Assembly: GCA_000708835.1 (NCBI GenBank)
Contig: DF237718.1
Span: forward strand, 1 to 35,028
Direction: 5' to 3'
DNA length: 35,028 nucleotides
Source: Klebsormidium nitens
Taxonomy: Eukaryota > Plantae > Klebsormidiophyceae
The notes below the pieces were generated by a model that saw only the letters and a program-made list of their open reading frames with translations, searched no databases and was not told where the DNA came from. The translations under genes were made by a program, and so were the position numbers. Below, one piece after another: positions 1,419 through 35,028 of this stretch (the stretch's first letter is position 1; each line of letters starts with the position of its first letter).

Positions 1419-3279
1419 CTGCTGCACCTGATGCAATGCCAAGAGCTGCCCCTGCTGGCAGACCTGCTGCAAATGCTGGGAAGCGCCAGTCCCAATCAGT
1501 TCCTAGAGCTGATCGTGCTAATCCAGGTGAGCAATGCTCATTTCAACCAGCGACGCTCCAACATCGCCACCGGGTTTCGGGAGAAGCTCTACGAGCTGGT
1601 CGGGCATTCACGCCTCTCGAGCACGGCTCACCGGGCCGACGTCCCGGCTAGAGTGGCAGCACTTGCCGAGCTTGCGGCGAGTAAGTCGTGACAGGCATCT
1701 CTAAGGATTGCCCCCGTTTCATCAAACCTCTATTTTCAGAAGCTGACACTGTGAGTTTGCAAAAGTGCTTGAAAGCTTTTCCCGAGTAACAGTACTGTTC
1801 GGTTGGTCTAACTCTTTTGCTTTGTGGTCAGTAACCTGGATACATCAAACAACTCCGCCTGCCAAGGTCACCTTGTAATCAGACCAAATCTTCGTTCTTA
1901 AGTTTGGAGTGCCTTTCAACTTACCTATCCTCTAGTCCAGCCTGTGCACATGCCAAATATTCGATTGTCGTTGGCATCATCAATCTGTTGAATGCTCTTG
2001 GCTTCCGCAGGCAAAACGTGGCTGCGTGGCGGATGAAACTCCGACTCCGTGACCAACGACTACAAAGCGACGTCATCTACAAGGCCGCTGCTGTTGCATT
2101 AGGCGACAAAAACGCTTCACTCGCTGAGCCGCTCGGTGTCCGGACCGACATGTCGGCGTTCATCACCCATGTGGTGAGTTTCCAAGCTTCGTTGGAAGAT
2201 TAGGCTGAAAAGTCAGAAGCAGTAGGGAACATGGCAGACTGTGGATGATCTTGGCCCTGATTTCATACGCTTGATAGATGCCTCTTCCGAGAATGGGAAG
2301 GATCCCGCCTGTCCGTTTGACAAATGCAAGCTGCTCAATGGTTGACCCGTCCTTTGACCGGATTGACAGTCTGCTTCCACACCAGATTTGTAACTGCTGA
2401 TGTGCATTGTTGGTCGACCTCGGTGCCACGGCCGTCCTTTTTTCCTACATAGAAATCCGGCGTGTCTCCTTCAAATCGGAACCGGATTCAGAGAAGCTTT
2501 TTCAAGAACATGAGTTGCGGCAGAGATCCAGACTGTTGCTCAGCTTCCGTGCGTCTTTGGCCTTGTGATAGGCCGGGAATCTTTTGCAAATTTCCGCGTA
2601 GTCTGGGCCACTCCAGGCCCTGTCTGCCAGCAACGTTCGACATCAATTTTCTAACGTACCCCATGTGCTTCAGTGTTCTCCTTGAAGATTAAACTGGGAG
2701 TCCTCTTGAAGCTTTCTCAGAGGTTCTTTTTCGCTCTCCGTCCAGGAATGTTGCTTTACCGAAACATATGTTGACGTGCTCTCCTTTCTTTCCATCCAGG
2801 TTTTGAGTTCTGAGAAAAATCTCTGCCTAGCCCGCAAACTTCGCCCTACCTTTATGCAGGTTGCCGATTCTTAGTAGAAAATGGGAGTACAATTGTGTGC
2901 TTGCGCAACAGCAAATCGGCCTTTACTGGCTCCGGTCTTCTCGTTCTTGCAATGACTCTACGAGATTACCCTTCCCTGCCGACTTGATTGCTAACATCTT
3001 ATCGAATCCTTTCAGGGCGACCAGGGCCTCTTGGACAAGACGCTCAGCAGTACGCACGTCCATCAGGACCGCAACAAGATCGAAGACCTGGCCCGGCACA
3101 TCTGGCAGCTGCATCTGGACGGCCACCTGCCGAACGACAAGTTCGAGGTCGTGCCCCACCGGAAACCCCCCCCGGCAGCCGACGAGAATCTGATTCACAC
3201 CTTCCGCCTCCAAGGGCCGGACGAGGACGTGTACCGTAAGATAGCGAAGGACTACGGGTCCTTCTTGAGACACCTAAAG
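1419..3279 (+). CDS. Partial spliced gene, unknown protein (internal exons; start and end not resolved)
   Basis: Phase-compatible candidate exons: 1419-1680 (LLHLMQCQ...AELAA, donor gtaagt), 1941-2173 (..CAHAKYS...FITHV, donor gtgagt) and 3016-3279 (GDQGLLDK...SFLRHLK, ttcag acceptor, gtgcgt donor, strongly GC3-biased codons). No family recognised. The 3016-3279 exon is much better supported than the exon joins. Confidence 0.5.
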
Positions 3280-3379
3280 GTGCGTGACCTCATGGAAGAG
3301 ACCTTTCATGCTACACTTGTGGTTTTGGTTCGAGAAACTAATGGGTTTGGAAACGAAGCGCTGCCAAAGTTGGTGAGGA

Positions 3380-4262
3380 TGTTGGACCGGGGGAAGGGGG
3401 TCGGGAAACGAGTGCTGGACTCACGACGTCGAGGTGAGGGATTCGAATTGTTTGAGACGTGCTCTGATTCAAATTCGGGTTTGCTCTGAGATGCTTCGTC
3501 TTCTGCAAACCACGCACTAAGGAATCTGCGGACTAGCTGGACATTTGAACGTGGGCGACGGGGAGCGGTTGCTGGACGACGTCGACGCAAGGGGTTTGAT
3601 GTTGGGTTCTACAGGTTCGGGGTTCGGGTTCGGATTAACCAGATCTTTGCTTTTGCGTTTGTCGAGTGCGGTGGACTGGGCTACAAGCGACGTGGAGCGG
3701 TTGCTGGACGACTCCGAGGTGAGGGGTTCGACAGTGGGTTCAACGACGACGGACTTGGGTTCAGACTTCAGGCCTGATTTGAGTTGCCTAGTCTTTCAAA
3801 ATACGGGTTGTGGAAGCTTGAGAGTATGCTGGAGTGGGGGGCGAGAGACGTGGAGCGATTGCTCGAGGTAAGGATTATCAGTTCAGGTTCGAAGACGGGC
3901 TCGCAATCGGGATTAGATTTGGGTTAAGGTGCTTTTAATGACGAGTTCGGGTCGCAGAAGCTGGAGAGTACGCTGGACTGAAAGGCGGGCGACGGTGGAG
4001 CAATTGCTCTACGACGGAGGAGAGGGCTCTCGGAGGGTTCGGGTCCGGTTCGATGTTCGTTTCACGATTGACGCGGGTGGATGCTGAAGATTCAATCTGT
4101 TGGACTGGGGGAACGGGGACGTGAAGTGCTGGACGAAGCCCAGGTGAGGGGTATGAGTCTGGATGAACTACGGGTTAGGGTTTCCGCTTCGCTCTGAGAC
4201 CAGGTACGTCCAGTAATATTGGCATTCTCAAAAGTTCTGGATTGGGAAGGGCGACTTGAAGC
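3380..4262 (+). repeat. Degenerate ~125-155 bp tandem array, each unit carrying a splice-donor-like motif
   Basis: Recurring ...ctggac...gacgtggagcggttgctggacgac..gag|gtgagggg. Donor-equivalent positions are 3434, 3587, 3719, 3868, 4020 and 4144. Confidence 0.8.
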
Positions 4263-4357
4263 GACGCCGATCTTTCCAGTCAGCTTTCTGCATCGCGGTG
4301 CATGATCATGGTTTTCGAAACGCTAACCCTGCTGTTGCTTCTCGCTCGCTAGTGCAG

Positions 4358-5545: not shown

Positions 5546-5860
5546 TTACTCTCTGGAAGGACCCGCTTGGATTAGACAAAGAGAAGTATGGAATGACGAA
5601 CTTTCAAGTCCTTCGGAACCATGTGATTGAGCTGCAGGTTAGTACTAGATTCGGAATGAGCGCTCAGCAAATGCTATCGCACTAGAGTGACTCAGTAGCC
5701 AACATTGCAGTAGCCAACTTTGCACAGATATAAACAAAAGCATGTGCCCCTAGCCTGCAGATTCTTATATACATTCGCGAGACGTACAGGATCATCTGCG
5801 CAGACTTCGTGCCGTCGGTATTGTGGTAGATCGGACAATTATCCGTCTTCTGCTACAACC
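5546..5860 (+). pseudogene. Exon-like fragments, possibly a pogo/CENP-B-type HTH transposase remnant
   Basis: AG..GT-bounded segments 5546-5637 (TLWKDPLGLDKEKYGMTNFQVLRNHVIELQ) and 5761-5860 (SRDVQDHLRRLRAVGIVVDRTIIRLLLQ). The second loosely resembles CENP-B/Tc5 HTH helices. The phases do not join and no DDE motif was found. Confidence 0.2.
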
Positions 5861-12900: not shown

Positions 12901-15900
12901 GGCTGGTCCCAGGCAGACTGATCCTGCCCGTCCAGAACTTATCGCAAAGAGACCAACCGAGCGCGAAATTACAAACGCAAATGGACAAAGCCAGGTCTCA
13001 TCTTTTGATGACGTGAAGGCTTACGTCACGGAGGCATGGTCACATGCGCACTGTTCGTGCTCGTCCAGGCGCTTTCTTCTAAAACAAAGAGGCGCCGAAA
13101 TGAAACCATGCGAGCGCAAACTTGCAAACTCCAGAAAAGTAGATTCAGAGTAAATTGCGTTGATGACGTCGAGGCTTACGTCACGGAGGCCCTGGTCCCA
13201 CGCGTACTGGTCGTGCTCGTCCAGGAACTTGCCCTCCGTCATCTCGGACACCACCCAGCCCGGCAGGACGTTGGTCACCGTAACGCTGCTGCCCACCTCC
13301 GCGCGCAGCGTGTCGAAGAAGCCCAGCGCCGCGTGTTTCGCCGCCTGGAAAAATGGGTTGAGAAATGGGTTTGAGAGTGGTTAGAAGATTTACCCAGCTG
13401 GATTCGACGATGGTTCCGCTTCTAACCCGGCTTGATTCGACGATGGGTCAAGTCCTTGGATACGCTGCTGCCCACCTCCGCGCGGACCGTGTCGAAGAAC
13501 CCCAGCGCCACGTGTTTCGCCGCCTGGAAAAACGGGTTAATCAATNNNNNNNNNNNNNNNNNNNNNNNNNNNNNNNNNNNNNNNNNNNNNNNNNNNNNNN
13601 NNNNNNNNNNNNNNNNNNNNNNNNNNNNNNNNNNNNNNNNNNNNNNNNNNNNNNNNNNNNNNNNNNNNNNNNNNNNNNNNNNNNNNNNNNNNNNNNNNNN
13701 NNNNNNNNNNNNNNNNNNNNNNNNNNNNNNNNNNNNNNNNNNNNNNNNNNNNNNNNNNNNNNNNNNNNNNNNNNNNNNNNNNNNNNNNNNNNNNNNNNNN
13801 NNNNNNNNNNNNNNNNNNNNNNNNNNNNNNNNNNNNNNNNNNNNNNNNNNNNNNNNNNNNNNNNNNNNNNNNNNNNNNNNNNNNNNNNNNNNNNNNNNNN
13901 NNNNNNNNNNNNNNNNNNAAAACGGGTTAATCAATAATCTAGAAATGGGTTGAAAGCGGCTCTGTTCAACGATGGCTGAACCCCTGAATACGCTGCTGCC
14001 CACCTCCGCGCGCAGGGTGTCGAAGAACCCCAGGGCCGTGTGTTTCGCCGCCTGGACAACGAGGTCAAGGAATGCGTTATAGAGTGGTTAGGAGCGCTCC
14101 CCGGCTTGGTTCAGCGATGGCTCTGCAAAAAACGGTTAGAGATTGGGTTAGAGAGTGCTTAGGTGCGGTTCCCGGCTTGGTTCAGTAAGGGTTCAATCCC
14201 TTGAACACGCTGCTGCCCACCTCCGCGCGGACCGTGTCGAAGAACCCCAGCGCCACGTGTTTTGCCGCCTGCAAACATGGGTTTTAGCTTCGGTTAGCCG
14301 GTGGTTGAGAAGAGCCAACTCATATTTTGTCGTGCTCTGGTTTGAGACCTGGATGTCTCTTAGCGCTGCCCACATTGGCGCGAACCATGTCAAAGAAGCC
14401 CAGCGCAGCGTGCTTCGCTTTCTGGAAAACATGGTTTAAGTATGGCTCAGTGGATGGTTCGAAGTGCGTTTCTGCCACAGCGATGATTTGCCCCCTTTAT
14501 CATCAATTTGCCTGCCTCCGTGCGCAGCGTGTCAACGAAGCCCAGTGCTGCGTGCTTCGCCGCCTAGGAACAGATTTGAAGACTGGGCTTAAGGATGTGG
14601 CTAGGAGCGAATTTCTTGGCCGGTTCAGCAGCAAGTTGTCCCCTCTAAAGTGCTGCGCCCGGAGGATGGCAGCGTGTTGAAGTAACCCAGCGCCGTGTGC
14701 TTCGCCGCCTGTGGAACCATGAAGGACTGGTTATATGGATGATGGTTCGAAGCGGCTGCCTGACCCGTTTTAGCAGTGCTTCACCCCTTTCCAGTGTTGC
14801 CGCCTCCGCGCGCGCGAAGCGTTTCGAAGAACCCCAGCGCCGCGTGCTTCGCCGCCTGAAACATGGGTTTGAGGATGATTGAAACTTTGGGTCAAGGAGG
14901 GAGTGCAGCACAAACCTAAGGAACGTGTTCTCTATCTCGGCGCGAGCGTATTGAAGTAGCCAGCACCGCGTGCTTCGCCACCGGAAAAGTGGTTACAGAG
15001 AGGCTTAGCAGGCTGATTAGACTCCGAACAGTGGCCCGACGTGGTCTGCCTTGAAGTTTTCCATGTGCTGACACCTCAAGGCCCTGTACGGTGGTGGGGG
15101 CCCAAATTGGCCGAAGCTGCAATCTGGTCCGTTGAAGACAGTTTCGGATGCACGGAGCGTTCATTTCCGGAGCTTTGAAATCGCACGCCTACTGTAAAGA
15201 TCTACCAGCGAAGCCCCTCAGGAAGTTCCCTACTTTCAAACGAACACCGCACTCACGTTGTAGATGCCCATGCGCGGGTACGGGATGAAGCTGGCGACCG
15301 AGATGATGTTGAGCAGCTGGCCGCCGGTCGCCCTCAGGTACGGCAGCGCGTAGTACGTCGGGTACACGTGGCCCCAGAACGTGGTGTTAATAACCTCGCG
15401 CGCGGCGTCGAGGCTCCAGTTGGGCGCGTCCGCGACCAGGAAGCTGTGCGCGACCCCCGCGTTGTTCACCAAAATGTCGACTGCAAAGGGAGGGGAATTT
15501 TGGGTTGGTACTTTTGTTAACTTGATTGGGTCAAGGAGCGTGGTCACCAGTTCGAGCAAAGGTCCAGGCTCCACTCGGGCGCGTCCGCGACCAGGAGTCT
15601 GCGCGACCCCCGCATTGTGTGCCAGGATGTCAACTCCAATAACGGGGTTTGTGTACTGGTTAATGAGCCAAAAAAAGGGTTAAGCAAAGCGTCTGACGAA
15701 TAATCTCGCGCGCGGCGTCCTGGCTCCATTTGGGCGCGTCCGCCACCAGGAAGCTGTGCGCGTTGCGCGATCCCCGCGTTGTTCACTAGGATGTTCAAGG
15801 ATGTTGACTGCAAAAACGGGGTTTGTGAAGCGGTAGTGTGCCAGAAAACGGGTTAAGGAAAGGGCTAATTTAGGACGTTAATTCGATCTTTCGGGATCTT

Positions 15901-24400: not shown

Positions 24401-24935
24401 ACTCTCTGCTCATGGCAGGAGATTGCATGAGTGCTTCCCCTAAGCATTGGTTCCAGACCAATTGCACATTTGCACACACAGCAACAGGGCAGCTGGATTG
24501 ACAATCTCTGGTGCGCGCCTCTGCTCATGCGATCTTGCACGTCATGCCTCAACAGGGACCTCATGGATTAATTGCCTTTTGGTTCGACCATGGATGCCAC
24601 TTACCCACGGAGGCCTCGTTTCTGTACAGAGCGGCGGTGTCAATGTGGCGGTACCCCTCTTGCAGCGCACATGCAACCGCTTCTTCTGTCTCAGGGCCCG
24701 GCGCTGACTGAAACACCCCAAGGCCAATCCTAGGGATCTTGACACCCTGCTTCAGAGGTTGATTGAACACCTCGATGCTGTCAGTATATGGCTTTGCGTG
24801 CGACATGTTTGTGCGCGTGGCTAAACCCCCAAGCTGGGAGCTTGAAAGACCGCTGGAGTTGTGAAGCGCCTGACGGATCGCAACGGCCAGCAGGATCATG
24901 CAAAGGACAAGCGAGCAGCGTATCATACCACGCAT
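21483..24935 (-). CDS. Aldo-keto reductase, AKR5-like (2,5-diketo-D-gluconate/glyoxal/prostaglandin-F-synthase type), 7 exons, 326 aa (283 aa from the internal ATG at 24806)
   Basis: Exons 24935-24605, 24375-24329, 24030-23943, 23617-23442, 22815-22690, 22189-22073 and 21578-21483; all introns GT-AG, in phase (981 nt). Motifs [38 protein letters not shown]. Catalytic tetrad D (IDTA), Y (LYRN), K (TTKL) and H (LVHS) is intact. Confidence 0.95.
21713..21840. other. Cluster of palindromes and a hairpin in AKR intron 6
   Basis: Perfect 16-bp palindrome ggacgctgcagcgtcc (21757-21772), overlapping 12-bp gtccacgtggac (21769-21780), 12-bp inverted arms ggaccgtatctg (21777-21788) and cagatacggtcc (21819-21830), plus tcctagga and taggccta. 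Confidence 0.8.
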
Positions 24936-25330
24936 AGAGTGCACTACCGGAGACACGATGACAAGGAAACGAGAGCTCTAAAGTGAGCGCGTCTCCCACC
25001 AAATAGGCACCAGCGGAAATTTGCCCAGGAAGAACCAGAACAATTAGTTGAACATGAAGTTGAAGCGGATCGGACCAGCAATATTAAATAGCTGAGCGCT
25101 GCACGCGTGCCGCGGCCGCCCCGCCGGGCCCTGGAATTCAAACGTCAAACCCCTTTCTTGAGACGCGGAACTTTGTCCACTGCTGACGTCATCATCTATG
25201 ACCGGTCACTGACTAGCTGCTTTCTGCGCGCAAAGCGACTGCCCCGGTCGACCAACACCGACGTCATGAGCCGGACGTTGGATCATCTTGGATGAACCAA
25301 TTCAACCCACAAACGTGCGGAGACTGCTCG

Positions 25331-29798: not shown

Positions 29799-30615
29799 AA
29801 AAAGTGTCGCGGTTCTGGAATCAAAGTGGTGGTGGTCGGCGCACAGTGCTGGTTGTGACCGGGCACAATAGCACAAGGGGGGCCCGCAGAATTTCGAACG
29901 CGTTTTCGTCTTAGCAACCGTGTTTTTCCTTGCCTTCGGGACCCCTAACTAATATTTAGTTAATGTGTTCCGGTAAGTTCGTACTTACCAGAACCAGTAC
30001 GACCGTTCTGGTTGTACTCGGCGCCCTGAGTCCGGCAGTCCACCTCCAAGAAGCGCCTTTGCCGAAGTCGCACCTCGCTGTCTTTGAGTATACGTCACCG
30101 GGTGCCTGTAATCTCTAAACACAAACCGTCTCGTCGTGGACTTTGGGCCCGCACGTGATTAAGCTCGAAAAGTTCTTGCAGCAGGAGCACTCACCAGACT
30201 CCATACAAGGATTCCGGCGCGAGGCATATTACGGCGTCACCTTTTAGAAGGGGCCCCGTTGGTCAAGCTGAAAAACTGGAAGTGCTTCTTCTTTAAATCC
30301 GTCAAAAGCCGCTCCTTTCAGGACCGTTCCCGGCAGGAAACATACGTGCTGAAATGACTCTCTATGCTGTCTAAGCGGAGAACGTTCGTGTTGCATATTG
30401 TCGTTTATGAACATCGTCCAGACTGCAAGTCGTGCGTCCGGTTTTTGGGACGGCAGAGCGCGGGCGCCGTGCACTTTTGCTCTTACCCGGCCCCGGTTTC
30501 TCTAACCATACATTCATCACGGAAAAGTGTGAGCTTACGCAGTGAAATGAGTGTGTACTCGTTGTCAACGGTCGATCGACGCATACGTGGTTGACGTGAG
30601 ACCTTATGCAATATA

Positions 30616-30658
30616 CTAGGCGAAATACTCATTAAAAACGTCGAAGGCTTCGACGTTT
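30616..30658 (-). other. 11-bp-arm hairpin with CTAG downstream on the minus strand (Helitron 3'-end-like)
   Basis: aaacgtcgaag-g-cttcgacgttt (30636-30658). On the minus strand, CTAG|T follows 16 nt after the hairpin (30619-30616). Confidence 0.3.
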
Positions 30659-31405
30659 CTTTTTGGGCGGCGGCCTCATATTACCGCCAGACACCCGGTT
30701 GCAATCGCTTGTTTGAAAAGGGTCTGTTTGGAAGACGTGGCAGATGTGTATGCGGGATCGACGCGTGTTGCTTTTGGATTTCGAAGCGAACATGGCAGAA
30801 TGCTTGTTTATCGAGCAGTCGGGATATTCACGAGTGTTGCGTGGACGCTTTCAATTTTCTCAAGTATCTGTCGAAAAAGCTTGTTGTTCTGTCACCTCAA
30901 GTAGGCGGGTCAGACTCATTCATGTGGACGAGAGGCATGGGAGGTTGATTCATTCTCAGTTAGGAATACGGTACCTCAAGCTTCTCACCGACGTAACCAT
31001 GTGAAAAGCAGTATCATGGTCCTGAGAATCGCCCCAAAGCACTCTGATATTCATTTGATTTCACACGTCAGTGATCATGGCAGTGACATTGGACAACTGT
31101 TAAAGAACTAATACGCCATAATTGAATAGGTGCATATCATCCTCAAAAAGTTCAGGCAGATGGCGGACCCAACATGATTAGTCCTGACGCTAAACCCGTG
31201 TACGCTGCAAACCATTTCTCGATACTAACTGGTCGCAACGGTACGCGAGGCAGCTCTCCATCTCCAAGACTTATTTCCTAAAATCTCGGGACCCTATTGT
31301 GATCGCTAGTGCTCCTAGTCAAAGTGTCGACCCTTTCATTTGAGTGCAAACTCCTTCCTCTCTGCTTGGTACAATTTGTACCGGGCACTTCTGTGTCGCC
31401 ATCGC

Positions 31406-33496
31406 TTAAGCGCTGAGCGCCAGGATGTACTCGTTCTCAGAGTCCTCGTTGGGGAAGATACGCTTGTCGGCGGCAATGACGCGGCGCTGCATCTGCCCGG
31501 TGACCTCGCGGTAGCTGCGGGTTCCTCCCACCAGGGCCAGGAAGCTCTCGGGGCGGTAGTCGGAGTGCACGTTGCCGATGACCATGATCTGGCCTGCAGG
31601 AAGGTGACGTCATACCTTGCGTCAGAACGGTGACATAAGAGTGAAGAGTCTTCTGGGTACAGTAGGGAGGCGAAGGAAGCTATGTTAGGGATCTGTTTGA
31701 AGGAACATAAGGGAAAGGAGGGACGTCTGGGTTCCGGAGCTTAAGTTCCTCGTGACGTGGCACCACTAGTAGTTCTAGATAGCTTAAGTGGGAAATTGCG
31801 GATTGGAAGAGCAACTCTGCAGAACTATATTTGGAAGGATGAACTGTTCAAGATTGATCAAAATTCAATGTTGCGGCTCAGATTGACCGTCTTGACTCCA
31901 TTGATCAGGTCCCTGATTTCTTCCCAGATGCTCAGCAAAGCGATCGTTCCGCGTTGAACATCTCTTGAACCATCTCAGAAAGTTTGTTTGTGCGACAAAC
32001 AATTTGAGCCTGTTCTCAAGACTGCTGTTCTGTCATTACGGCAACAAAAATAACATAGCTATTTCACTAGATACTGATCCTAGCTTCGTCAACCAGACTG
32101 CAGGTCCCAGAAAGAAAAGAAAGTCCGAGCCTTGCCTGCGTCGAAGTCGAAGGAGTACTGGCAGTTCTCCACAGAGCCTCCGGGGAAGGCGTTGACCACA
32201 TCGCACTTTCCAGTCACCTGGCCGTAGACGACGCTCTTGTCATAGAAGTCTGAATAGGCGGTGTAGCTGAAGATCTGCGCGCAACAGAAGAGGCACGTCA
32301 GGCAGAAGATCTATGCTTGCAGAAGAAAGGGTCCTCATGTCTGTAGGAAATCCAAGCCAAAAGTGGCAAGACAATCTGTGGGCGGATTGTTTCTCAGACA
32401 ATCGTATAGAGCCACTGGATCTGCAAGTTGGGGCCCCTTTTAGAGCTTCCTCGATTCCTGGTGAAACTTGCCAATGGGCCATGTGGCTTGAAGGGTTTTC
32501 TCTCTGTCATACCCACTCTTGATCAGGACAAAGAGAGGTAACTAAGAGCTAACCCAGTTTAGTTAGCAGGGAGTTTGCTACGTGTCACTCACCCTTGCAG
32601 AGCCGAGCGCATTGGGGTAGTCGCCCTGCTTGAAGGTGGGCCCAACTCCACGGACCCTGATGATCTGGAAACAAAGGAAGATGATTGGTGGTTTGTATTT
32701 CAAGCGGCATCGGGTTCTGAGTTGACCAATGTGCTCGTTGGTCGTTGCAAAGCTTAGAGGAAAAGGTCAGACCACCAGGGTTGCTTTTCAGTGAAGTACT
32801 TGCTTAGCTCTTTACGGAAGAAAGACACCTAGTCAAAGACTGACTCCTGCTTTGTGAGAGCTCTGAGAAAGTAGATTGTTTCTGAGAAACGAGAGCAACC
32901 GGCCAGGTCTTTGAAATCATTCAGGCCTGACGGCATTGGGCTTTCCTATTGAAGGGGAATGTCTAACCACAAATCTCTACTTGACAGAAAACAAAACTTC
33001 TTTCAAGCCATTGCAGTTAGAATGGAGCCAACGAAGAGAAACCCTTGAGGCGCTGGATTGCGGGTCAAGCGACAAATGCTTATTCACAGCTGCCTGGTCA
33101 GAAGTCAGTTGGAGAGTCACTTCAGCAAACAGTGTCTCCGCCAAAGAGGCCTCCATAATGCAGCAGACGTAAGGAATCTACCTGATGACAGCATTCCGCA
33201 CTTAGACCACCAGTACCAAACAGCATTAAAAACACAGTGCTTCCTCGCTAGGGGCACCAACCAACCGCATGACCATTGGCTGCCCTTTCCAGCCTACAAA
33301 CCCATGACCAACCTCCAGCAAGCTTGCAGTCCCCGAAAGAAAGAATGAAGCTTCAGTCCAGTCAGTTTCTCGGTTCTGCCAAAAGGCGGTGGTGAGAAAT
33401 GCTTACCGTCTGCGGTGACGCAGCGAGGGCGAAGGAAGCGACGGCGGCCCCCACAAGGGCGACCAGAAGCAGCGCTGCAACAGTGCGGGAAGCCAT
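31406..33496 (-). CDS. Secreted allene-oxide-cyclase/dirigent-fold beta-barrel protein, 4 exons, 162 aa
   Basis: Exons 33496-33407 (signal peptide MASRTVAALLLVALVGAAVASFALAASPQT), 32664-32593, 32274-32136 and 31593-31406 (TAA); in phase (489 nt). Motifs NALG..IF, YGQVTGKC, CQYSFDFDAGQIMVIG and ESFLALVGGTRSYREVTGQM parallel the AOC pattern NSLGDLVPF / GITAGLC / YSFYFGDYGHLSVQG / DSFLAITGG.GIFEGAYGQV and the dirigent VVGGTG motif (recalled, not searched). Confidence 0.8.
31594..32135 (-). other. GC-AG intron (intron 3 of the barrel-protein gene)
   Basis: Donor GCAG|gcaagg, acceptor ccttcctgcag. A phase-1 join gives FDFDAG-QIMVIG, matching the barrel pattern with no insertion. Confidence 0.7.
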
Positions 33497-33607
33497 GGTG
33501 CTGGGAAGTGGTCGCCGAGAAGAGGGCAGGTGGGCTGCGGATGAGCAAAAGGATGCTGGAGAATGTCAAGGGCAAAAAGAATGCTCGAATCAACGTGAGG
33601 TTCTGCG

Positions 33608-33614
33608 TTTTATA
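33608..33614 (-). promoter_or_regulatory. TATA box of the barrel-protein gene
   Basis: ctataaaa on the minus strand ~115 bp upstream of the ATG, followed by a pyrimidine-rich leader. Confidence 0.55.
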
Positions 33615-35028
33615 GCTGGTAGAAAGCCTTTAAACAGTCTTTCAGTGTCCACTGAACATAGGTGCCTGGGTAGGTGAAGTGTATTACCTAGTCGTGTCAA
33701 GGTATGATCACTAGATAGCTACTAAGCCTAGGCATTGGCGCGCTTTCCACTGGAGTTTCACATTTCCTTGGTAACGGCATGCCCAGACAGTAGTAACTAG
33801 ATCTTGGATGATGTCATGTTCACTGTCGTGGTGGAAACAGTGCTGCGGCTGCAGTGGGCCCTGTCACCAGCCCGTCACCAGTGCAGCTCAGTCGATATCA
33901 GGATTCAGGACTTGGGCGGCGGAATCTAGAATCTACCGTAGGCCAGCTCGTACACAAGGACGTTCGCATTAATACTGTACAAATAGGCTAACAATCTTGT
34001 AAGAATACCTAGTACGTTTCCAGGTCACTTTGCTGATTTACATTAATTTGCTGTTAGGCTGAATAATGCCCTGCCCGCAAACCTCGCTTGCCATTGCTGG
34101 TCAGGATTCCAATTTCCAGTCTGCTCCAGTCTGCTCTAGTCAGTGCTCATTCCCTGTAGCAGGTCCATACGCTATGCATTTACATCCTCAAAACCCGGGA
34201 GTCTCCAATGTCCAGGCGTAGTCAATACGACGGCGGATTAATTCAATGCAGCGTTTCGAGGTCAAGAGTGACGAGTCTGGCGTGACTCGGTTTAGAGCAC
34301 GTAGCACGTATCCGAATCCTGGCAAGTACCGTACATGGTACCGTGACGTCAGATTTGGTACCTCTTTCATACCCTGTGTTCGACACGAGCCGTCAGACAT
34401 ACCGTACCGTAGTGGCCTCCGACGCTATTGAGCTACTCGGTCCTCTCAACCGAGGGGCATTAGAATCAAAAAGCACGGTACACCATCCGTATGGGTGAGA
34501 CAAACGGACGGAGTTGCCGGATTAGGGTTCTGCCGGTTAACTGGACGCCGACAGGTTCGAAAGCTTCTTGTCGAACGCTGCAGTGTTACCGTACGTACGT
34601 TGATTGTACCTCTAGGCTTCGGTCCTTCATTTGTTTTCAGAATTCCCGGTCCTTTCCCGACAAAAGCGCACGATTTTTCGATCAATCAAATCACACGAAG
34701 TTTGAAGGATAAGTTTGAAGGACAGCAACGCTAAACCACAAAGCTTGACCAAAAGTTTTCACAGCCCCCACCCGTGCTTAAAGCCCCTAGCTAACCCTGG
34801 CTAACCCTGCCCGTCCCAGTAAAATTCCTCATGGCGACTGTGATTGGCAGAGCCTGAGAAACGTCAAGCATGTCAAGACTAGGTCCTCGCCCCTCCACGA
34901 TGTCGATCGAAATCAAAATCGCCACTTCATGGGAAGCTGACTTTCCGGAATGCGTGCGGGTAGACCGGTCACCGTAGTTGAGTAAGGGTACCGTCACTTT
35001 GAAGTGGCACCCGGTTAAGGTATTTTAG

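Follow-up and report, generated by a model that had tools for sequence, protein, structure and literature searches.

The subject of this analysis is KFL_007690050, a gene on the minus strand (positions 33496-31406) of a stretch of 35,028 nucleotides (nt), here called the window, which is one entire scaffold (DF237718.1) of the alga Klebsormidium nitens. We establish the structure of the gene, the splicing of its transcript and purifying selection on its product, and we consider it probable that this expressed nuclear gene encodes a secreted, trimeric, small-molecule barrel of the bacterial dirigent-like type with a cysteine pair. Secretion, the barrel fold, the disulfide and the trimer are predicted from sequence features and structural models, and by analogy with its relatives the barrel may bind a ligand and may act as a catalyst. 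The gene was already public and automatically named; what is new is a corrected GC-AG intron in both K. nitens paralogues, together with the bacterial-type signature of the protein. The work is thus a modest addition and not a discovery, and a preliminary description of the locus, made from the DNA letters, had overrated its novelty, since UniProt/UniRef already holds the name 'Dirigent protein'.

The four coding exons (Table 1) comprise 489 nt in total and specify 162 amino acids (aa) and a stop, with a reading frame that is unbroken through all of them; coordinates, frame and splice sites agree with the four-exon, 162-aa protein that the preliminary description had assembled. The further statement that the open reading frame (ORF) track calls none of the exons in the correct frame holds at the default cut-off of 60 aa, under which the exons fall because they are short, but not at a cut-off of 20 aa, where all four appear in the right frame within ORFs of 41-59 aa. 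Considering its three spliceosomal introns and host-like composition, KFL_007690050 is a resident nuclear gene and not contamination. An Rfam scan of positions 30500-35028 gave no match.

Contigs from four public runs were aligned to positions 30900-33900, and all three exon joints were found in them, which is the point that had been set beforehand as a refutation test of the gene model. Since these contigs skip the introns at exact splice sites, they derive from spliced RNA. The first joint (32664 to 33407) is carried by a contig of run X2 that lies on 33620-33407 plus 32664-32593 (286 nt) with no differences, and whose 12-nt loose end past 32593 is the exact first 12 bases of exon 3. The second (32274 to 32593) is carried by a contig of run X1 which differs at six bases and by a 3-nt deletion in exon 3 and hence stems from a copy closely related to KFL_007690050. 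The joint between exons 3 and 4 (31591 to 32134) is found in an X1 contig lying on 32195-32134 plus 31591-31451 (203 nt), again with no differences; it has 6 nt of slack, within which splice-like ends occur in the +2 register only, giving GC..AG at 32135/31594. Run X1 also holds two contigs inside intron 1 (32850-33071 and 33061-33100), the second of which continues into 156 unrelated letters at 33100; it may stem from a further transcript, from a repeat or from unspliced RNA.

The public record of the gene is GAQ91343.1, a 176-aa 'hypothetical protein' (UniRef A0A1Y1IKX2, named 'Dirigent protein'), and the locus was named in no paper found in the literature. A whole-library search with exon 4 retrieved this protein, 100% identical across exon 4, and the translation of exon 1 is identical to its residues 1-30. 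The public protein differs from the 162-aa model only by 14 additional residues between FDFDA and GQIMV, which are the translation of 32135-32094, the first 42 nt of intron 3; the read-through arose because the GC donor was avoided and the next in-frame GT (32093) was used. At the locus of the paralogue KFL_002250010 (DF237174.1) the same donor is present (GACGCAG/gcaag), and its public model reads through at the same spot, within 3207-3300, for 23 residues, whose sequence is unlike the 14 of KFL_007690050, while the exons flanking the read-through are ~95% identical between the two genes. Moreover, a metagenome contig from ENA (ERZ26273096:ctg155937) has a GT donor at the position of the GC donor. 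The 14 residues are without counterpart in the 57 bacterial relatives described below, the gap in the hhalign alignment falling exactly over them, and they form the stretch of lowest confidence in the AlphaFold2 (AF2) model, with a predicted local distance difference test score (pLDDT) of ~55. Considering the X1 joint, the shared donor and mismatched inserts of the paralogues, the GT donor of the ENA contig, the bacterial gap and the low pLDDT, we conclude that the 14 extra residues are intronic and that the 162-aa model is better than the public one. In both paralogues the public model has a spurious insert within the predicted barrel; the insert weakens domain detection and should be corrected. 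The whole-protein analyses presented below used the public 176-aa protein as a stand-in for the 162-aa protein.

Sequence searches gave three close relatives or copies only: KFL_002250010 (91% identity by alignment and 85% by BLASTP, both with the read-through inserts included), the copy on ERZ26273096:ctg155937 and the variant copy in run X1. On the ENA contig the four exons are collinear, with protein identities of 63-87% for exons 2-4 and 54% for the signal-peptide exon 1, and in comparison with the window the exons alone align, the introns not being alignable. In this comparison dN/dS over exons 2-4 is ~0.15 (dS 0.85, dN 0.13), and hence the protein is under purifying selection. The ENA copy has, within 5562-5695, lost 2 nt of exon 3 at the Asn codon that precedes the second Cys, which breaks the frame; this is likely an assembly error, since the codons downstream are still conserved, or otherwise a recent lesion. 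The same contig further carries a gag/aspartic-protease retroelement and an SF-assemblin gene.

The remaining sequence searches added little. Exon-by-exon searches of Pfam and of PDB sequences gave chance-level matches only, a word search with exon 4 returned just a 59-aa fragment call, and word searches with the public protein and with the paralogue pair returned the paralogue only. Nothing was found when bacterial and archaeal genomes and JGI metagenomes were scanned with the protein's own peptides, or when the public protein was run with phmmer against PDB sequences. Two candidates were rejected. A 482-aa tandem-repeat protein (unit ~57 aa, at least six copies) that matches exon 4 with E 1.5e-15 was taken for chance, the match being six summed stretches at 50% identity in what looks like translated repeat DNA, and a tblastn match on a Neorhizobium plasmid, which lies on the antisense strand of an ABC-permease gene, was discarded.

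The product of exon 1 has an n-region (MASR) and a ~20-residue hydrophobic core, AxA sites lie at positions 20 and 25, and AF2 models a helix at residues 4-22. Secretion of the product is predicted from these features, which are those of a signal peptide and not of a plastid transit peptide, as had been proposed, and cleavage is likely after residue 20 or 25. The mature protein contains exactly two Cys (in GKCD and ENCQ), both of which are kept in KFL_002250010 and in the ENA copy.

The relationship to bacterial proteins was assessed by profile comparison. A bacterial set was assembled by scanning a collection of bacterial and archaeal genomes with a DNA pattern of A-x-V-G-G-T-x-x-[YF]-x4-G, which gave 111 in-frame matches; 67 of them lie in the C-terminal third of small ORFs (120-260 aa), and 57 of these ORFs were aligned, the A/V/G/G/T/G motif columns being invariant by construction. 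At E<=1e-3, 28 of the 57 pass AOC_like and 28 pass Dirigent, the families named for allene oxide cyclase (AOC) and for dirigent proteins. When the two K. nitens proteins were compared with the 57 ORFs in hhalign, the probability was 97.4% (E 1e-11, score 67, query columns 63-164), and this match to a bacterial AOC_like/dirigent-like set, a check of the HHpred type that had been proposed, survived its controls. Shuffling everything but the motif gave scores with a median of 26.6 and a maximum of 31.5. When the motif and the entire C-terminus were removed on both sides, the score was 37.9 (27.5 if the signal peptide was left out too), and 12.8 was the highest score among shuffles of that region. 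Since the score with the motif cut away beats the shuffles, the similarity reaches into exon 3, outside the selected motif. The matching segments include G72, G76, Cys78, Cys92, F96, F98 and GQIMV.G, and among bacterial sequences a Mycolicibacterium protein matches best. Against PDB the family profile scored best with the pyocyanin demethylase PodA (E 2e-17), followed by AOC2 (3e-10) and pterocarpan synthase (PTS) dirigents (2.5e-7). Additionally, all neighbours in ESM-feature space for which a family is named fall in a single clan (AOC_like, 0.90, 180 shared features; Dirigent, 0.90, 173). A giant-virus cluster in the ESM atlas (61 Nucleocytoviricota proteins, score 0.90) also stands among the nearest feature neighbours. 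In a Chitinophaga metagenome-assembled genome, positions 2051-4331 hold a 166-aa AOC_like/dirigent-like ORF in three adjacent tandem copies, so that local expansion is seen in the bacterial family too.

Structure prediction points to the same superfamily. With the bacterial alignment, AF2 gave a model (pLDDT 79.8, predicted template modelling score 0.71) of eight main strands, at residues 30-37, 53-61, 70-84, 87-98, 115-124, 130-138, 146-153 and 167-175. Its Foldseek matches in PDB were PodA (template modelling score 0.81-0.86 by target), AOC, PTS, AtDIR6 and AbyU, at E 4e-7 to 1e-4; further matches were AOC2, moss AOCs, the dirigent domain of rice JAC1 and the Diels-Alderases Cyc15, PyrI4 and PloI4. 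In VIA-align the Z scores were 16.9 for PodA (root mean square deviation 1.9 A, 119/122 residues), 16.8 for GePTS1, 15.7 for AtDIR6 and 15.3 for AOCs, unrelated barrels coming next at Z 7-9, and a search by shape in the ESM atlas returned AOC_like, Dirigent and AOC clusters. The barrel of AOC/dirigent type that had been put forward from the strand pattern thus appears in the model, as an eight-stranded prediction whose best matches (Z 15-17) all belong to the AOC/dirigent superfamily. A predicted fold other than this barrel had been named beforehand as a second ground for refutation, and it was not obtained. Giant viruses encode barrels of this superfamily, as seen in the BFVD entries A0A7D3UR16 (Fadolivirus 2) and A0A481ZBU2 (Pithovirus LCPAC403), with Foldseek E values of 1.6e-4 and 2.3e-3.

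Without recourse to an alignment, ESMFold2 folded residues 27-176 at pLDDT 76-84 and predicted a homotrimer with an ipSAE of 0.86, compared with 0.00 for the best control, the runs agreeing in at least 95% of contacts. The ipSAE mark, which is reached by 21 of 30 solved homo-pairs and by none of 23 solved single chains, was calibrated on two copies, not three. The predicted trimer interface includes residues 132-140, which hold the GGT motif, and a role at the subunit interface has been proposed for this motif in bacterial dirigent-like proteins (PMC9344732).

At the level of single residues, the column of AOC2 Glu23 (profile position 43) is occupied by Gly36, Glu being found there in 12 of the 57 bacterial members, and no Glu occurs between the cleavage region and residue 90, so the absence of the AOC catalytic Glu noticed earlier is borne out by the profile alignment. 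The active-site residues of PodA are reportedly D68, D72, H121, E154 and Y156 (Costa and colleagues, 2017), numbers that fit the PodA sequence in the alignment. In the profile columns D68 corresponds to Arg54 and D72 to Tyr58; H121 adjoins H124, in a loop of uncertain alignment, and E154 and Y156 are without clear counterpart. In the AF2 model Cys78 is placed on beta3 and Cys92 on the adjacent beta4, as had been predicted for the two Cys, and each is aligned with one of the two Cys of PodA; the pair occurs together in 24 of the 57 bacterial relatives, with singletons in two. A disulfide between Cys78 and Cys92 is probable. A beta3/beta4 Cys pair is present in 42 of 49 bacterial dirigent-like proteins, whereas plant dirigents differ (PMC9344732). 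In comparison with the family pattern A/P-x-x-GGTG-x-Y/F-x-x-x-R/S-G, the motif ALVGGTRSYREVTG retains A, V, G, G, T, Y and the last G but not the fourth Gly or the Arg.

Several results weigh against this reading and lower our confidence in it. Membership by Pfam's own rule is not shown: the proposed check against Allene_ox_cyc, Dirigent and AOC_like found no family reaching its gathering score. With AOC_like (PF18678) the public 176-aa protein scored 12.7 bits (E 0.1), below the cut-off of 25.9, the 14-residue insert splitting the domain in the scan. With Dirigent (PF03018) the same protein gave no match in the Pfam scan, while KFL_002250010 scored 13.7 and exon 4 of the ENA copy 13.3 bits (E 0.05-0.07), against a cut-off of 29.1; for Allene_ox_cyc (PF06351) no Pfam match was found with KFL_007690050, KFL_002250010 or exon 4 of the ENA copy. 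The unrelated family Baculo_p26 scores at the same level as AOC_like and Dirigent. (Membership of Baculo_p26 itself was rejected as being without structural backing, no p26 being among the viral structure matches.) The family sequence GGTG...ARG reads GGTR...VTG here, the fourth Gly being Arg140 and the Arg being Thr146. Neither the AOC nor the PodA catalytic residues are conserved, which makes a role limited to binding or structure no less possible than catalysis. As for the models, the AF2 alignment consisted of bacterial proteins picked by a motif shared with the query, the folded sequence was the 176-aa public model including the 14 spurious residues, and with close relatives alone AF2 reached a pLDDT of 38, a model that was not used; the trimer result may reflect model memory of the solved AOC, dirigent and PodA trimers. 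The secretion call is made from n-region, core and AxA features of the sequence, and the 'RNA?' label of the runs is a guess.

Weighing these points, we still consider the bacterial-type dirigent-like barrel the probable explanation. On this explanation, a signal peptide of ~25 residues would be removed to release a secreted protein of ~137 residues, which would fold as an eight-stranded barrel of the AOC/dirigent superfamily and assemble as a homotrimer with the GGT motif in the subunit interface. Like its relatives it would be cofactor-free, and the barrel pocket could hold a hydrophobic or aromatic small molecule outside the cell, which it might simply bind or whose conversion it might steer through one reaction, be it a cyclisation, a coupling, a tautomerisation or a dehydration.

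The absence of the known catalytic residues makes binding without catalysis a rival to be taken seriously: the product may be a secreted protein that serves in binding or defence, has retained barrel and trimer but no catalysis, and, for example, sequesters a microbial metabolite or binds a wall component. The substitutions at the AOC (Glu23 to Gly36), PodA (D68/D72 to Arg54/Tyr58) and motif (Arg to Thr146) positions fit such a protein, as does the constraint on its family-specific residues (dN/dS ~0.15). However, the present results fit binding and catalysis alike, and dirigent proteins were themselves at first taken for non-catalytic, a precedent that counts against this explanation, and we judge it unlikely while granting it real weight.

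A plant-type dirigent, i.e. an apoplastic guide of the stereoselective coupling of phenoxy (monolignol-like) radicals produced by laccase or peroxidase, and as such an algal forerunner of land-plant dirigents, seems to us improbable. We know of no coupling substrate for a dirigent in K. nitens, which weighs against it. UniRef calls both paralogues 'Dirigent protein', the Dirigent matches of KFL_002250010 and of exon 4 of the ENA copy, though sub-threshold, exist, a signal peptide is predicted from exon 1, and the Z scores to AtDIR6 and the PTS dirigents are 15.7-16.8. Yet 13-14 bits are far under the 29.1-bit cut-off, the conserved motif Arg is Thr146, and identity in the structural alignments (12-17%) is less than to AOC and PodA. 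Moreover, the Cys pair is that of the bacterial beta3/beta4 type and not the N-terminal pair of the pinoresinol-forming plant dirigents (PMC9344732).

We regard as very improbable a PodA-like tautomerising demethylase, secreted by a soil alga to detoxify bacterial phenazines such as pyocyanin. PodA is the best match both by structure (Z 16.9) and by profile in PDB (E 2e-17), it has the Cys pair in common with the algal protein, and the best bacterial sequence match is from Mycolicibacterium; but the Z scores of PodA, dirigents, cyclases and AOCs are tied within ~1.6, and PodA chemistry is unlikely because the columns of D68 and D72 hold Arg54 and Tyr58, E154 and Y156 again being without clear counterpart. 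Finally, a true AOC of the oxylipin/12-oxo-phytodienoic acid pathway, which the shared fold and the highest structural-alignment identity (22-25%) might suggest, deserves next to no credence, there being no Allene_ox_cyc Pfam match, and the product is not an AOC, since the catalytic Glu is Gly36 and a secretion signal stands in place of a plastid transit peptide.

Dirigent proteins and AOC are usually seen as land-plant innovations, tied to wall phenolics and to jasmonate-type signalling. Considering the origin of the gene, we suggest, as a doubtful conjecture only, that Klebsormidium holds a family of secreted bacterial-type barrels that were either transferred from soil bacteria (e.g. Actinomycetota) around streptophyte terrestrialisation or are remnants of the lineage that gave rise to both the land-plant dirigents and AOC. 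In a quick tree of the two algal and 57 bacterial proteins only, the algal pair sits on a long branch in a polytomy, and therefore no donor can be named. If the conjecture were true, the Klebsormidium barrels, whether transferred or ancestral, would connect the bacterial proteins with two families that are hallmarks of land plants. A transcribed and constrained streptophyte-alga relative with a predicted secretion signal and the bacterial Cys signature offers a concrete protein for asking about the origins of these families, and KFL_007690050 allows a test of the role of such a barrel outside a cell that makes no lignin. Apart from the intron correction, the finding assigns the protein to a family, as automatic annotation had done before.

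The features of the gene are collected in Table 1. Elsewhere in the window, a weak aldo/keto-reductase Pfam match (E 4e-4) in the minus-strand ORF 24561-24956 probably marks an exon of a neighbouring gene, and positions 13001-14000 form a sharp low-GC island (GC 0.35, compared with ~0.5 elsewhere) in which long ORFs of the two strands overlap (13365-13937 on the plus and 13422-14003 on the minus strand) and for which no Pfam match was found.

Table 1. Features of KFL_007690050 in window coordinates
Feature	Position	Strand	Remarks
5' untranslated region, minimum extent	33497..33620	-	X2 contig reaches 33620; no ATG upstream; in-frame stops precede the start
Exon 1, coding part	33496..33407	-	30 codons; ATG in CACCATGG context; predicted signal peptide and first mature residues
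Intron 1	32665..33406	-	GT-AG, 742 nt; joint 32664->33407 in run X2
Exon 2	32664..32593	-	24 codons (IIRVRGVG...GSAR); predicted strand beta1 and following loop; AOC-Glu column is Gly
Intron 2	32275..32592	-	GT-AG, 318 nt; joint 32274->32593 in run X1
Exon 3	32274..32136	-	139 nt, phase-1 end; predicted strands beta2-beta4
Cys78 codon	32203..32205	-	in exon 3
Cys92 codon	32161..32163	-	in exon 3
Intron 3	31594..32135	-	GC-AG, 542 nt; X1 joint without mismatch
Exon 4	31593..31406	-	188 nt including TAA stop at 31406-31408; predicted strands beta5-beta8
Family motif ALVGGTRSYREVTG	31496..31537	-	end of beta6 and next loop; predicted trimer interface
3' untranslated region, minimum extent	31254..31405	-	X3 contig 31254-31520, no differences

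In comparison with known systems, the algal protein has a predicted barrel in common with the AbyU/PyrI4/Cyc15-type Diels-Alderases of actinobacterial polyketide pathways (Z 15-16), but these are cytoplasmic dimers encoded in biosynthetic gene clusters, a context that the algal gene does not have. The allene oxide cyclases (AOC2, 2BRJ/1Z8K; PpAOC, 4H6A) have the barrel (Z 15.3) and the highest identity in structural alignment (22-25%), and differ in their catalytic Glu, for which the algal protein has Gly36, while the algal protein bears a secretion signal and lacks a match to their Pfam family. The plant dirigents (AtDIR6, 5LAL; PsDRR206, 4REV; pterocarpan synthases, 6OOC/8TH2) are secreted barrels that form trimers (Z 14-16.8), as predicted for the algal protein, but identity is 12-17%, the Dirigent score is far under the cut-off, the Cys pattern is another one and the motif Arg is missing. 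PodA (Mycolicibacterium fortuitum, 5K21) is the best structural match, with 20% identity, the same Cys pair, a trimer (predicted for the algal protein) and action outside the cytoplasm; the positions of its acidic D68 and D72 are taken by Arg and Tyr in the algal protein, which makes demethylase chemistry unlikely. The bacterial dirigent-like proteins (PF18678/PF03018; PMC9344732) differ in that the algal protein is eukaryotic, is encoded with three spliceosomal introns, scores below the Pfam threshold, reads GGTR...VTG in the motif, has an extra insertion of ~9 residues before beta8 and sits on a long tree branch. With them, however, it shares a single domain of ~130-200 aa behind a predicted signal peptide, the predicted eight-stranded barrel, the beta3/beta4 Cys pair and part of the A-x-V-G-G-T-G-x-Y/F...G motif at the end of beta6. 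The preliminary description of a dirigent-like protein is supported as regards the AOC/dirigent superfamily; in subtype, the protein is closest to the bacterial dirigent-like type, more than to the plant dirigents.

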